Below are positions 4,988 to 60,083 of a stretch of 64,000 nt of DNA, one piece after another; within the stretch, counting starts at the first letter, position 1; every line of letters starts with the position of its first letter. The position numbers and the translations under genes are program-made. Below the pieces are notes generated by a model. The model made no database searches. It was not told the origin of the DNA and worked only from the letters and a program-made list of their open reading frames with translations. The stretch spans positions 806,001 to 870,000 of the forward strand of contig NW_025767224.1 of the NCBI RefSeq assembly GCF_003918875.1. The letters run 5' to 3'. The stretch is from Haliotis rubra. Taxonomy: Eukaryota.

Positions 4988-7000
4988 ATGGTGAGTGCCA
5001 ATATCTGATGTCAACATGTAGGATATATCTCATATCACGTATCAGGTTCATATGTATATTGTATAACATTTCAATAAGAATATCTTGGGTGTGAAACTAA
5101 AAGGAAAATGAATATTCGCGTCTTCTTCATAAGTCTAAGAAAACAGATGCTCAAAAGGTGAATGTATCATGTTAAGAGACATATTCGCCTTTCGCCCTTT
5201 CAGAATGTATTTCTCATTTGTGAATTACATAAAATGCAAATGGCACTCAAGAAATAAAGATTATAGTTTAGACTTGCTAGTAATTTTTATATCAATTTAC
5301 TATTTAAACATTATTATCAAATACATAAATAATAAACAATTGTTAATACCTTTACATTACTAAACATTCTTTTGGTTACTTGTCAACAAGTAAAAGTTTA
5401 TATGAGCTCGAATATAATATCCCACTTTCCTGTCTTGTCTTCAGAGGGAATGTATCTCCATCCACGTCGGCCAGGCCGGAGTCCAGATGGGCAATGCATG
5501 CTGGGAGTTGTACTGTCTTGGAGCACGGCATCCAACCCGATGGTCAGATGCCCTCAGACAAGACCATTGGTGGTGGGGACGACTCCTTCAACACCTTCTT
5601 CAGCGAGACTGGAGCTGGGAAGCACGTCCCGAGAGCCATCTTTGTTGACCTCGAACCAACAGTTGTCGGTGAGTACATTAAATGATTGATGATGAAACTT
5701 GCACGTATTAATCACACAGTATGTGTTGTACAATAATACGGCTATTGATCGTTTACTTATTGTTGTAAGTGTTATTGTAACGATTCTTAGGTAAATGTTC
5801 AAAACAATCATGTGTGAAAATCATATTTGACAGCTCCATCCTATTCATTCTAAAACATACATATTTGCAGATGAGGTTCGAACCGGCACCTACCGCCAAC
5901 TGTTCCACCCAGAGCAGCTCATCACCGGCAAGGAGGACGCCGCCAACAACTACGCCCGTGGCCACTACACCATCGGAAAGGAGATTGTCGACCTCGTCCT
6001 TGACCGCATCAGGAAGCTGGCTGACCAGTGCACTGGACTCCAGGGCTTCCTCATCTTCCACAGCTTCGGTGGCGGCACTGGCTCCGGCTTCACCTCTCTC
6101 TTGATGGAGAGACTGTCTGTGGACTACGGCAAGAAGTCCAAGCTGGAGTTCGCTGTCTATCCAGCTCCACAGATCTCCACTGCTGTCGTGGAGCCCTACA
6201 ACTCCATCCTGACTACCCACACCACCCTGGAACACTCCGACTGTGCCTTCATGGTCGACAACGAGGCCATCTACGATATCTGCAGACGTAACCTCGACAT
6301 CGAACGTCCCACCTACACCAACCTCAACCGACTGATTGGACAGATTGTCAGCTCCATCACTGCCTCTCTCCGATTCGATGGTGCCCTGAACGTGGATCTG
6401 ACGGAGTTCCAGACCAACCTGGTGCCCTACCCACGTATCCACTTCCCTCTGGCTACCTACGCACCTGTCATCTCTGCCGAGAAGGCCTACCACGAGCAGT
6501 TGTCTGTGGCTGAGATCACCAACGCCTCCTTCGAGCCAGCCAACCAGATGGTCAAATGTGATCCCCGTCATGGCAAATACATGGCCTGTTGCATGTTGTA
6601 CCGTGGTGATGTCGTCCCTAAGGACGTCAACGCCGCCATCGCCACCATCAAGACCAAGAGAACCATCCAGTTCGTCGACTGGTGTCCCACAGGCTTCAAG
6701 GTGGGCATCAACTACCAGCCACCCACTGTTGTCCCCGGTGGTGACTTGGCCAAGGTCCAGAGAGCTGTCTGTATGTTGAGCAACACCACGGCCATCGCCG
6801 AGGCCTGGGCTCGTCTTGACCACAAGTTCGATCTGATGTACGCCAAACGTGCCTTCGTCCACTGGTACGTGGGTGAGGGTATGGAGGAAGGCGAGTTCTC
6901 CGAGGCCCGTGAGGACCTGGCAGCCCTGGAGAAGGACTACGAGGAGGTTGGAGTCGACTCTGTTGAGGGCGAGGGAGAGGAAGAAGGAGAGGAATATTAG
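4988..7000 (+). pseudogene. TUBA: Alpha-tubulin copy 1; exons 4988-4990, 5445-5668, 5871-7000; +1 frameshift in exon 2 (pseudogene or assembly error)
   Basis: ATG|GTGAG, CAG|AGGGAA, G|GTGAG, CAG|ATGAG junctions; exon 2 is 224 nt vs 223 nt in the other six (TGTCTTGGAG vs TGTCTGGAG, extra T at 5518/5519), giving TGA at 5646-5648; exon 3 intact to GEEY-TAG; AATAAA 7048-7053. Confidence 0.9.
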
Positions 7001-7558
7001 TGCTACCCGTTAATTACTCTCAAATGTTCCTTTTTTTGGAACGACCGAATAAAAAGATTGAATATGAAACATTGTCTGTTTCACTTTATGGCATTTACAT
7101 CCGATCGCCACACTAGCGTAATACATAGTTGTTGAGCATCCTGTACGGTTTGTGTATGGTAGGTGATGTTAAATCATCTGTAGTACTCGCAGAATGGCAC
7201 CCTCGATAACTAATGTGTCATTTTTTAGAAAAGAAAATGCAAAACAGAAGACGCGTGTAACAGTTTGAAGTGAAAATGGTACCAAGCTGTCATCGTACCA
7301 CTTCCTCATTATGGTGATACACCATGAAACATACTTTCTCCAGAGGCACGTGGTTAAATTGGATAGCAATTACATTTTGAGGCGTTTAAGCCTTATAGAT
7401 ATTTCAAAGCGTCACCAAATATTGATACATCTAGTCACACACATACCCCTTGTATGTATGTATATACATCAAGTGCCACCAACACTTCAGTAAGTGATTC
7501 TATCTTGACACTTTTGTCAAACCGATATTTGACATCGTGACTTCGCCTTGAAACATGG

Positions 7559-57520: not shown

Positions 57521-60083
57521 CTAATATTCCTCGCCCTCTTCCTCTCCCTCGCCCTCAACAGAGTCGACTCCAACCTCCTCGTAGTCCTTCTCCAGGGCTG
57601 CCAAGTCCTCACGGGCCTCGGAGAACTCGCCTTCCTCCATACCCTCACCCACGTACCAGTGGACGAATGCACGTTTGGCGTACATCAGATCGAACTTGTG
57701 GTCAAGACGAGCCCAGGCCTCAGCGATGGCCGTGGTGTTACTCAGCATACAGACAGCTCTCTGGACCTTGGCCAAGTCTCCCCCGGGGACAACAGTGGGT
57801 GGCTGGTAGTTGATGCCAACCTTGAAGCCTGTGGGACACCAGTCGACGAACTGGATGGTTCTCTTGGTCTTGATGGTGGCGATGGCGGCGTTGACGTCCT
57901 TAGGGACGACATCACCACGGTACAACATGCAACAGGCCATGTATTTGCCGTGACGGGGATCACATTTGACCATCTGGTTGGCGGGCTCGAAGCAGGCATT
58001 AGTGATCTCAGCCACAGACAACTGCTCATGGTAGGCCTTCTCGGCGGAAATGACAGGGGCGTAGGTAGCCAGAGGGAAGTGGATACGTGGGTAGGGCACC
58101 AGGTTGGTCTGGAACTCCGTCAGATCCACGTTCAGGGCACCATCGAATCGGAGAGAGGCAGTGATGGAGCTGACAATCTGCCCAATCAGACGATTGAGAT
58201 TGGTGTAGGTTGGACGTTCGATGTCGAGGTTACGTCTGCAGATGTCGTAGATGGCCTCGTTGTCGACCATGAAGGCACAGTCGGAGTGTTCCAGGGTGGT
58301 GTGGGTGGTCAGGATGGAGTTGTAGGGCTCCACGACAGCAGTGGAGATCTGTGGAGCGGGATAGACAGCGAACTCTAGCTTGGACTTCTTGCCGTAGTCC
58401 ACAGACAGTCTCTCCATCAAGAGAGACGTGAAGCCGGAGCCAGTGCCACCACCGAAGCTGTGGAAGATGAGGAAGCCCTGGAGTCCAGTGCACTGGTCAG
58501 CCAGTTTCCTTGTGCGGTCAAGAACGAGGTCGACGATTTCTTTGCCGACGGTGTAGTGGCCACGGGCGTAGTTGTTGGCGGCGTCCTCCTTGCCGGTGAT
58601 GAGCTGTTCTGGGTGGAACAGTTGTCGGTAGGTGCCGGTACGAACCTCATCTGAAAGGAAAATTAGATTTAGATTTAGATAAATTTTTTAGATTATTTGG
58701 GCTGATGATCTTTTTTAGAAAATTGTTCATTGGCATATGAAAATATTCAATAAACTCACCGACAACAGTTGGTTCAAGGTCAACAAAGATGGCCCTTGGA
58801 ACGTGCTTTCCAGCACCAGTCTCGCTGAAGAAGGTGTTGAAGGAGTCGTCCCCACCCCCGATGGTCTTGTCTGAGGGCATCTGACCATCAGGCTGAATGC
58901 CGTGCTCCAGACAGTACAACTCCCAGCATGCATTGCCCATCTGGACTCCGGCCTGGCCGACATGGATGGAGATACATTCCCTCTGAAGTCAAGAAATGAA
59001 ATATGGAATATCATGTTTGGGCTCTTATAACACTTACAATTACTTGCTTTCTGGTAAATCGTTATAAACGTTTAGTAATGTAAATGAAGAGCAATATTTA
59101 TTTGCCGATAATGTTTAATAAGTAAATTAATATATACAAGTCTTGCTTGTCTGATATGTATTTCCAGAGTGTGTCAGTGGTTTCTGTTGTCAAGTTTTCC
59201 AGCTCAAGAGTGTGAAGTTGTGTTAAGTTGCAAACCAGTGTCTCGCCTACTTTCAACAAAAATCCGATTTACATAAACGTGACCAGTTTAGCAATTTCTT
59301 ATTCGCATTGTTGAGATATTGCTCAGGAAGATCAGTAAGGTTTACACGCTTCAAACACTGTTGCAACAGTTACACAGAGGATTGTACGGGTATTATCAAG
59401 AGTGGAATCCAAGCCTGGTCAACAGCATGGCAAGCAACTGGCTGGACTACACCAGATCCACGCCACATGAAGAAGCCGTTCTACATATTCTTGAACACAA
59501 TGTAGGTACACAGCGGCATATAATAACTCATGTTTCGTTTTCATTCGACATACTGAAATGCACGTGCTACACATGTACCTAGGGCTCAAGGGGCGGTGGG
59601 GTAGCCTAGTGGTTAAAGCAGTCGCTCGTGGCGCGGAGTACATCGGTTCTATTCCCCACGGTGTACAATATTTGAGAAGCCCATTTCTGGTCATCCGTCG
59701 TGATATTGCTGGTTTACAGCTAAAAGTGGCGTAAAACCATATTCACTCACTCACTCACTCACTCACCTCATGTAGTATGAACATACGGATTTGAATGGTG
59801 TGCTAAATGTTGGCACTGTAGTGTATATAATGATTATTACGCGTTACAGGATGCAGAATACATCATTCATCATACATCCAGTCTGAAGAAGGACATTTCA
59901 CCAACCGGGCAGGAAGGTCACGCCTTTTACAATAGGGCATAATTTAGATATTATTTCACTGGCAAACCTAAAATATTCTTAATGAAAGGTTTTGAAATGT
60001 CAATATTTGAAGTGTTTGGCATAGACATTAAGTCGATACGTGAAGCGTCATTCACAAGTATACACAACTGTATTACATACCAT
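57521..60083 (-). CDS. TUBA: Alpha-tubulin copy 7, 451 aa; exons 60083-60081, 58982-58760, 58650-57521 (I7, V110, T122, C295)
   Basis: GT-AG junctions, intact 1356-nt frame; intron 2 is 109 nt vs 94 nt in copies 5 and 6. Confidence 0.97.

Follow-up and report, generated by a model that had tools for sequence, protein, structure and literature searches.

We analyzed a 64,000-nt window of the genome of the abalone Haliotis rubra (scaffold NW_025767224.1, 3.1 Mb, positions 806001–870000), which carries part of an array of alpha-tubulin genes. Coordinates are those of the window unless marked as scaffold positions. Self-comparison with the largest tubulin reading frame identified seven copies in the window, four on the forward strand (copies 1–4) and three on the reverse strand (copies 5–7). 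The whole array comprises 14 copies at scaffold 771–872 kb, 10 on the forward strand and 4 on the reverse strand; outside the window lie six forward-strand copies upstream (a–f) and one reverse-strand copy downstream (copy 8). We find that coding exons and non-coding DNA are discordant in both directions. Among copies 5–7, silent divergence is 5–7 times intron divergence, while the silent divergence of old copies is far below what their introns lead one to expect. An earlier reading of the sequence (hereafter the original prediction) had proposed that exons exchange short conversion tracts across the whole array, including across the inversion, while introns follow duplication order.

An alignment of the 5' parts of the copies places three exons in every copy in the window. 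Exon 1 contributes the ATG only and ends there, exon 2 has 223 nt (codons 2–75 plus one base), and exon 3 has 1130 nt, up to the stop codon. Splice sites are GT..AG at all introns of the seven copies. The 451-codon frame is intact in six of them, copy 1 being the exception, and the seven proteins show at most four residue differences. Positions 4988 and 60083, between which the original prediction was placed, are the ATGs of copies 1 and 7. The seven genes are as follows.

Copy 1, 4988–7000, forward strand: ATG 4988–4990; exon 2 5445–5668 (224 nt); exon 3 5871–7000
Copy 2, 12374–14502, forward strand: ATG 12374–12376; exon 2 12960–13182; exon 3 13373–14502; 451-aa frame intact
Copy 3, 22918–25766, forward strand: ATG 22918–22920; exon 2 24302–24524; exon 3 24637–25766; intron 1 of 1381 nt
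Copy 4, 31491–34047, forward strand: ATG 31491–31493; exon 2 32568–32790; exon 3 32918–34047; intron 1 of 1074 nt
Copy 5, 40035–42573, reverse strand: ATG 42573–42571; exon 2 41481–41259; exon 3 41164–40035
Copy 6, 47605–50156, reverse strand: ATG 50156–50154; exon 2 49051–48829; exon 3 48734–47605
Copy 7, 57521–60083, reverse strand: ATG 60083–60081; exon 2 58982–58760; exon 3 58650–57521

Domain and structure searches used each exon as a separate query, and exons were joined only for codon statistics. Exon 3 matches the Pfam families PF00091 (Tubulin) and PF03953 (Tubulin_C, E about 1e-53) in the copies scanned (2, 3, 5, 6, and 7), and exon 2 matches PF00091 positions 1–56. When exon 3 of copy 3 was compared with solved structures, the best 60 of 69 matches were all alpha-tubulin chains, the best of them at E = 1e-259 with an alignment covering residues 75–451. 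The protein tail is acidic and its last residue is tyrosine, as in alpha-tubulins. Judged by these matches, the window genes are alpha-tubulins. Other scaffolds of the genome hold at least 26 more alpha-tubulin exon-3 matches at 81–94% identity, and raw exon divergence of other alpha-tubulin genes of H. rubra reaches 10–19%.

Divergence of silent sites, introns, and flanks

Exon identity is 94–98% in every pair of window copies, including pairs with unalignable introns, which bears out the near-identical exons of the original prediction. Nei-Gojobori silent divergence (dS) is 0.12–0.20 in all 21 window pairs, irrespective of intron similarity, and amino acid–changing divergence (dN) does not exceed 0.0034. 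Non-coding identity, in contrast, ranges from 97–98% among copies 5–7 down to unalignable in other window pairs. Unalignable introns had been predicted between copies 1/2, 3, 4, and 5–7. This is largely correct. Intron 1 of copies 3 and 4 has no detectable match to any other copy, and intron 1 of copy a, outside the window, is likewise unalignable to all others. Copies 1 and 2 match each other over about 220–230 nt at 76% and match copies 5–7 over 50–190 nt at 67–79%. Such residual matches, leaving aside copies 3, 4, and a, span 67–86% identity over at most 230 nt.

Copies 5–7 show the opposite discordance. Their dS is 0.127–0.171, their intron 1 divergence 2.2–2.7%, and their divergence in the upstream 400 nt 1.5–3.5%. 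Raw exon divergence is 2.5–5.4%, nearly all of it at third codon positions. In total, 62 silent changes fall on about 307 silent sites, against 39 changes on 1083 sites of intron 1 (odds ratio 6.8, P = 6e-19). At four-fold sites, 15.8% are variable, compared with 3.6% in intron 1 (odds ratio 5.0, P = 5.6e-10). With CpG sites removed, the values are 12.9 and 3.1% (P = 4.8e-7); the excess persists, and CpG hypermutation was rejected as its source. The original prediction had counted eight differences among 223 nt of exon 2 between copies 5 and 7, all silent, and about seven in the adjacent 300 nt of intron 1. Both counts are accurate: the eight exon differences must be silent since the two proteins are identical, and the 300 intron columns next to exon 2 hold seven substitutions and one gap column.

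A second young group, copies b–d, has the same composition and an intron divergence of 3–4%. Its silent-to-intron odds ratio is only 1.9, which differs from the 6.8 of copies 5–7 (heterogeneity P = 4e-4). A general mutation bias at silent sites was thus excluded. Copies c and d have a difference of reversed sign, with 5 differences in the 1716 nt of the exon 2–exon 3 core and 26 in the 891 nt of upstream sequence and intron 1. A long tract recently exchanged between two copies whose introns are homologous would leave this signature. The b–d group was therefore dropped as a conversion-free control.

Intron 2 of copies 5–7 (41165–41258, 48735–48828, and 58651–58759) is diverged by 5–10%, three times the intron 1 value. 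Here, 11 of 94 sites are variable, and copy 7 has a 15-nt indel.

Variants and modules shared across the array

The coding sequences (CDS) in the window have 116 variable sites, 107 of them at third codon positions and 33 in a CpG context. Of these 116, 55 are informative and fall into 32 different partitions, and 55% of the pairs of these informative sites fail the four-gamete test. Among the 13 full-length copies of the array, there are 151 variable sites, 98 of which are informative. None of the variable sites in these 13 copies is a fixed difference between the forward and reverse blocks. At 26 window sites, and at 38 sites of the whole array, each block carries both alleles, and 42 sites are polymorphic in both blocks where 19.5 are expected, an approximately twofold excess. 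The sharing of silent variants across the inversion, as originally predicted, is evident from these counts. The individual motif matches named there also reappear in the alignment: copy 6 matches copy 1 at ATTGGTGGTGGG, copy 7 matches copies 2–4 at ATCGGGGGTGGG, copy 6 matches copy 4 at GGTGCTGGGAAACAC, and copy 5 matches copies 1 and 2 at GGAGCTGGGAAGCAC. About 20 of the 61 variants within copies 5–7 are private to one copy in the array.

A two-site silent haplotype at codons 228–229 illustrates the pattern.

13830–13833, forward strand: AAT-CGT in copy 2
33375/33378, 40707/40704, and 58193/58190: AAT-CGT also in copies 4, 5, and 7, respectively

All remaining copies have AAC-CGA, and no recombinants between the two haplotypes are found. 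The distribution of AAT-CGT conflicts with the intron groups and spans the inversion. Along copies 5–7, the identity of the odd copy out forms runs in exon 3 (P = 0.018) and none in intron 1 (P = 0.61).

A maximum-likelihood tree of the exons from the 13 full-length copies, with copy e excluded, is star-like. It groups copies 5 and 7 (97%), 6 and 8 (80%), and b, c, and d (100%). The two ends of the array (a–d on the forward strand and 5–8 on the reverse strand) cluster with support of 88/96, apart from f and 1–4. This clustering may be a trace of an inverted duplication. Across the CDS of the 13 copies, derived silent alleles arising from AT-to-GC changes are present in a mean of 6.6 copies, compared with 2.9 for GC-to-AT changes (P = 0.0013). 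The GC content of third codon positions is 72%, and that of intron 1 is 39%. The spread of AT-to-GC alleles is compatible with GC-biased conversion; selection on codon usage or wrong polarization would match it equally.

Intron 1, intron 2, and the 3' flank each yield different groupings of copies. Copy 8 has a 3' flank 98–99% identical to those of copies 6 and 7 and introns unrelated to theirs. The flank of copy a recurs in b and c alone. In copy f, intron 2 pairs with copy e, and the flank pairs with copy 1. Thus, the non-coding modules have apparently been reshuffled too, via exchanges or crossovers inside exons, and the idea that introns simply follow duplication order, part of the original prediction, is too simple, as copies 8 and f illustrate.

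A block of about 160 nt upstream of the ATGs (e.g., 4832–4987, 12218–12373, 22762–22917, and 42574–42724) is a conserved stretch of promoter and 5' untranslated region and contains TGTATATAAGTG. It is alignable in all copies except copy 8, with 76–84% identity between intron groups and 96.5–99% within copies 5–7. This block could be a second, shorter island of homology and a potential exchange partner.

The genome also has a second alpha-tubulin array. It is present twice, in collinear form and 3–5% apart (C377, 188–205 kb; C2413, 75–85 kb), as either unpurged haplotigs or a segmental duplication. Exon 3 of one of its genes (L015) is 0.5% from that of L016 and 1.1% from that of L017, with unalignable flanks, and 2.0% from that of its own collinear partner (L020).

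Probable gene conversion and its alternatives

We favor gene conversion among the copies, confined to regions that retain homology, as the probable explanation, with considerable room left for others. The coding exons of the 14 copies would then act as one recombining pool. Ectopic conversion, with occasional crossovers inside exons, would start and spread only where paralogues have stayed similar. In the exons, this similarity would be preserved by purifying selection on a nearly invariant protein, while introns and spacers would have drifted beyond recognition. Each copy would repeatedly receive short coding stretches from others in either orientation. Old copies would thereby be held at a silent divergence of about 0.15, short of saturation, and the young copies 5–7 would quickly have been raised to the same level by imported variants, leaving their silent sites more diverged than their own introns. 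Conversion restricted to the homologous exons would account for discordance in either direction, for the opposite sign found in copies c and d, for the reassorted flanks, and for the pattern of the second array. The divergence pattern, the shared variants and haplotypes, and the absence of fixed differences between the strand blocks are observed; we infer that conversion is their cause, at a per-site rate of about 100 times the mutation rate, with effective tracts that are very short (about 10–25 nt) or patchily repaired.

In our simulations, 14 copies mutated and converted one another at random. When the per-site conversion rate is approximately 120–130 times the mutation rate, pairs of copies show about 45 differences (observed, about 50), with 132 variable and 93 informative sites (observed, 151 and 98). 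A triplet with non-coding DNA as young as that of copies 5–7 acquires about 40 differences, near the observed value.

Formal recombination tests give a mixed picture. Site incompatibility is reduced at distances of up to 10 nt (P = 0.0004–0.003) and up to 30 nt (P = 0.0008–0.02), so that linkage reaches only 10–30 nt, and it is above chance for sites 30–60 nt apart. In a GENECONV-like test, 9 of 78 pairs fall below 0.05 (binomial P = 0.016). A permutation test under a copying model gives P < 0.0025 for 12 copies and P = 0.0125 for the seven window copies. Two candidate tracts stand out.

57980–58181, reverse strand: best discrete candidate in the window; copy 7 CDS 696–897 equals copy 8 at 25 consecutive polymorphic sites
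58229–58376, reverse strand: candidate across the inversion; copy 7 CDS 501–648 equals copy 3 (24911–25058, forward strand) at 18 consecutive polymorphic sites

The first has P = 0.005 and the second P = 0.0044, both uncorrected and neither significant when corrected; the introns of copy 8 are unrelated to those of copy 7.

A series of results weighs against conversion as we describe it. The standard pairwise homoplasy index (PHI) test is not significant in windows of 50–200 nt (P = 0.13–0.37). The best of the 78 pairs in the GENECONV-like test (P = 0.0012) does not pass the Bonferroni limit of 0.00064. The approximately unbiased (AU) test does not reject a 5-6-7 clade on exons (P = 0.165). 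On these three tests, the original prediction of short tracts and of differing exon and intron histories does not reach significance. The main test that it named, dS against intron divergence among copies 5–7, bears it out, and we regard its interpretation as partly supported. In addition, the copying-model signal disappears once sites up to 3 nt apart are thinned, and no long segment of copies 5–7 has a near-identical donor among the present copies. Imports also offer no explanation for the divergence of intron 2 in copies 5–7, as intron 2 of the other groups is unalignable and cannot have been the donor. Lastly, all our results come from one consensus assembly built from error-prone long reads.

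The simulations sharpen the problem with tract length. With a mean tract length of at least 35 nt, PHI (up to 100 nt) was significant in at least 94% of runs, and only mean tracts of about 8–20 nt often left it non-significant, as observed. We had considered that ordinary tracts of 100–300 nt might erase linkage in a 14-copy family, and this idea was rejected, since tracts of 35 nt or more already keep PHI significant. For the conversion model to hold, tracts must thus be very short or patchy, or linkage must have been blurred later, for example by a per-site choice of haplotype in the consensus. The tract length suggested by these models is the least secure part of our interpretation. One tentative proposal, which we consider rather unlikely, is a true equilibrium of conversion and mutation. 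Micro-conversion or patchy heteroduplex repair, with effective tracts of about 10–25 nt and a rate about 100-fold that of mutation, would operate over 100 kb to the same extent whether copies are direct or inverted.

The nature of the assembly bears on these readings. The H. rubra draft is a meta-assembly of Nanopore and Illumina data made with wtdbg and DBG2OLC (Platanus contigs plus Nanopore reads) (PMC6774278). It was finished with two rounds of Racon, one of Pilon, QuickMerge, RNA-guided scaffolding, and purging of haplotigs, and the sequenced individual has a heterozygosity of 1.3–1.4% (PMC6774278). Within 134 kb of the scaffold, there is a single gap.

7559–7687, no strand: assembly gap (run of N) in the spacer between copies 1 and 2, 559 nt 3' of the copy 1 stop codon

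The gap lies outside every exon, intron, and compared segment, the farthest of which ends at 7550. Its only effect is that a scaffold join is what connects copies 2–7 to copy 1 and to all that lies upstream.

Frame-breaking indels are present in 3 of the 14 array copies. Copy 1 has one additional T in exon 2 (5517/5518), which is absent from the original prediction; once it is removed, the copy 1 protein equals that of copy 2. Copy c has two additional nucleotides (CT) near scaffold 782.0 kb. Copy e, near scaffold 793.4–794.7 kb, has one additional G within a G-run, and its final ~240 nt are exchanged for unrelated sequence. Neither copy 1 nor copy c, both full length, has accumulated an excess of amino acid changes, and the indels would thus be either assembly errors or very young or converted pseudogenes.

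Such an assembly could have given real alleles to the wrong copy or haplotype during consensus building. This is the main rival reading and, given the pipeline, a serious one, though we consider it unlikely as the source of the pattern. Illumina-derived steps could cross-map only in exons, and per-site majority calls between haplotypes of a 1.3–1.4% heterozygous individual would add to the mixing. The error would be confined to exons because only exons are common to all paralogues. The pipeline itself, the 1–2 nt indels in 3 of 14 copies, and linkage of only 10–30 nt, a reach shorter than that of typical conversion tracts and close to that of k-mers or of polishing site by site, are consistent with such mixing. 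However, the concentration of differences at third codon positions (107 of 116) excludes random consensus error, and the unalignable introns and spacers anchor long reads. Cross-mapped short reads should also make copies 5–7 more alike rather than 5–7 times more different than their introns, and some 20 of the 61 variants in these copies are private to one copy. Copies c and d were preserved 4 differences apart, with b at 19, and the scaffold, with its one gap in 134 kb, was assembled through a 1.5-kb array of 36-nt repeats. Recurrent mutation is highly improbable. A limited set of fast two-state silent sites would mutate in parallel in independent copies, producing homoplasy with no exchange, and links between adjacent sites would come from multi-nucleotide mutations. 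This would suit the near confinement of linkage to sites at most 3 nt apart, the weak PHI and GENECONV-like results, and the 33 CpG-context sites; hot spots would also yield the excess of sites polymorphic in both blocks. Yet it cannot lift the silent divergence of copies 5–7 to 5–7 times the intron level, an excess that holds at non-CpG four-fold sites and is not of that size in copies b–d. Nor can it keep dS at 0.12–0.2 where introns are unalignable and other alpha-tubulins reach 10–19% raw exon divergence, and the double-site haplotypes would require at least three independent double hits.

A further alternative is that copies 5–7 are as old as their dS implies and that their upstream regions, intron 1, and 3' flanks were recently homogenized by separate long events that stopped at the exons. 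Neutral divergence is indeed low on either side of the exon 2–exon 3 core and high inside it, intron 2 included, and the 3' flanks of copies 6, 7, and 8 are nearly identical despite the different introns of copy 8. Still, this history would require at least two independent homogenizations per copy, ending at exon edges and sparing the best-conserved 1.4 kb. Long tracts among copies 5–7 would have no reason to skip exons, and the long tract between c and d covers exactly the exons. We regard it as highly improbable, and it remains a conversion model. Conversion templated by spliced cDNA would account for strict exon limits and has a low probability; the exon 2/3 junction is flanked by only about a dozen variable sites.

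Related systems and the surroundings of the array

Concerted evolution confined to coding regions is known from gene pairs of the yeast whole-genome duplication (PMC3924837) and from Caenorhabditis paralogues (PMC3966223). In both, the limitation to coding sequence is credited to purifying selection that preserves the required homology, and conversion between oppositely oriented paralogues is also on record (PMC3924837, PMC3966223). Conversion has also been described as raising variation within a copy (PMC3966223). The abalone array is similar in that exons are alike where non-coding homology has been lost. It differs in having 14 members at an equilibrium silent divergence of about 0.15, rather than pairs near identity, and in having young duplicates that are more diverged at silent sites than in introns. 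We found no report in the literature of young duplicates that exceed their own introns in silent divergence in this form.

Tandem arrays of tubulin genes also occur in protists. For Leishmania beta-tubulin (PMC1533823) and Naegleria alpha-tubulin (PMC2115128), concerted evolution or exceptional similarity has been reported. The likeness to the abalone array is that tandem tubulin genes are very similar within a genome. The protist genes are presumably intronless and far more uniform; in the abalone array, unlike these, the introns form an internal clock that exposes the process. Vertebrate major histocompatibility complex (MHC) and immunoglobulin genes undergo micro-conversion, in which diverged paralogues create fine mosaics through very short templated exchanges, from a few up to tens of nucleotides long. 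There, the exchanged variants alter amino acids and are thought to be selected, whereas the abalone variants are silent, in a protein with at most four residue differences. Parker and Detrich reportedly described, in 1998, an alpha-tubulin cluster of the Antarctic fish Notothenia coriiceps that expanded through duplication and inversion. We know of no analysis of silent versus intron divergence for that cluster, which belongs to another phylum and has another gene structure.

No paper on abalone tubulin arrays was found in the literature. An exact-protein look-up of three copy-specific exon-3 frames gave no match, and the matches of a word search with exon 3 were all alpha-tubulins of other animals (some of them primate), with none from Haliotis. 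The array may thus far be taken as a new, rather clean example of a known process, with a very short effective tract length as a possible addition.

If the pattern is real, conversion would hold old paralogues together and push young duplicates apart at silent sites of the same locus. Every duplication in the family would then be wrongly dated by silent divergence, with old ones appearing too recent and recent ones too ancient, which would be a warning for the dating of tandem expansions in molluscs. With introns as a clock, the array would allow estimates of the rate, tract length, and GC bias of ectopic conversion, none of which exist for this animal group. If the equilibrium by micro-conversion is true, silent variants in the exons of the 14 genes would behave as in a freely recombining population, with the introns as independent clocks. 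The locus would then be an exceptionally clear natural system in which to measure the rate, tract length, and GC bias of ectopic conversion in a mollusc. If the pattern is an artefact, single variants in multi-copy exons of early Nanopore/Illumina hybrid assemblies would be untrustworthy.

The spacers of the array contain repeats and mobile elements. At 35685–37163, there are 41 copies of a 36-nt tandem repeat, and at 38191–38511 a repeat of 22/44/95 nt. Both sit exactly at the point of convergence between the forward block (copy 4 ends at 34047) and the reverse block (copy 5 ends at 40035). On both strands, the long reading frames at 35677–36434 are by-products of the 36-nt period. Fragments of reverse transcriptase (Pfam RVT_1) occur at 1529–3483 (forward), 9876–10508 (reverse), and 15666–16202 (forward), and the retroelement stretches 2484–4032 and 15613–17159 are 69% identical copies. 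Between copies 5 and 6, a reverse-strand frame at 44316–45290 has the domains of a Tc1/mariner-type transposase (DDE_3 and HTH_Tnp_Tc3_2) and lies near a break in the repeat unit common to copies 5, 6, and 7. Between copies 6 and 7, the stretches 50575–51506 and 53094–53976 form an inverted repeat of about 0.9 kb with arms that are 87% identical.

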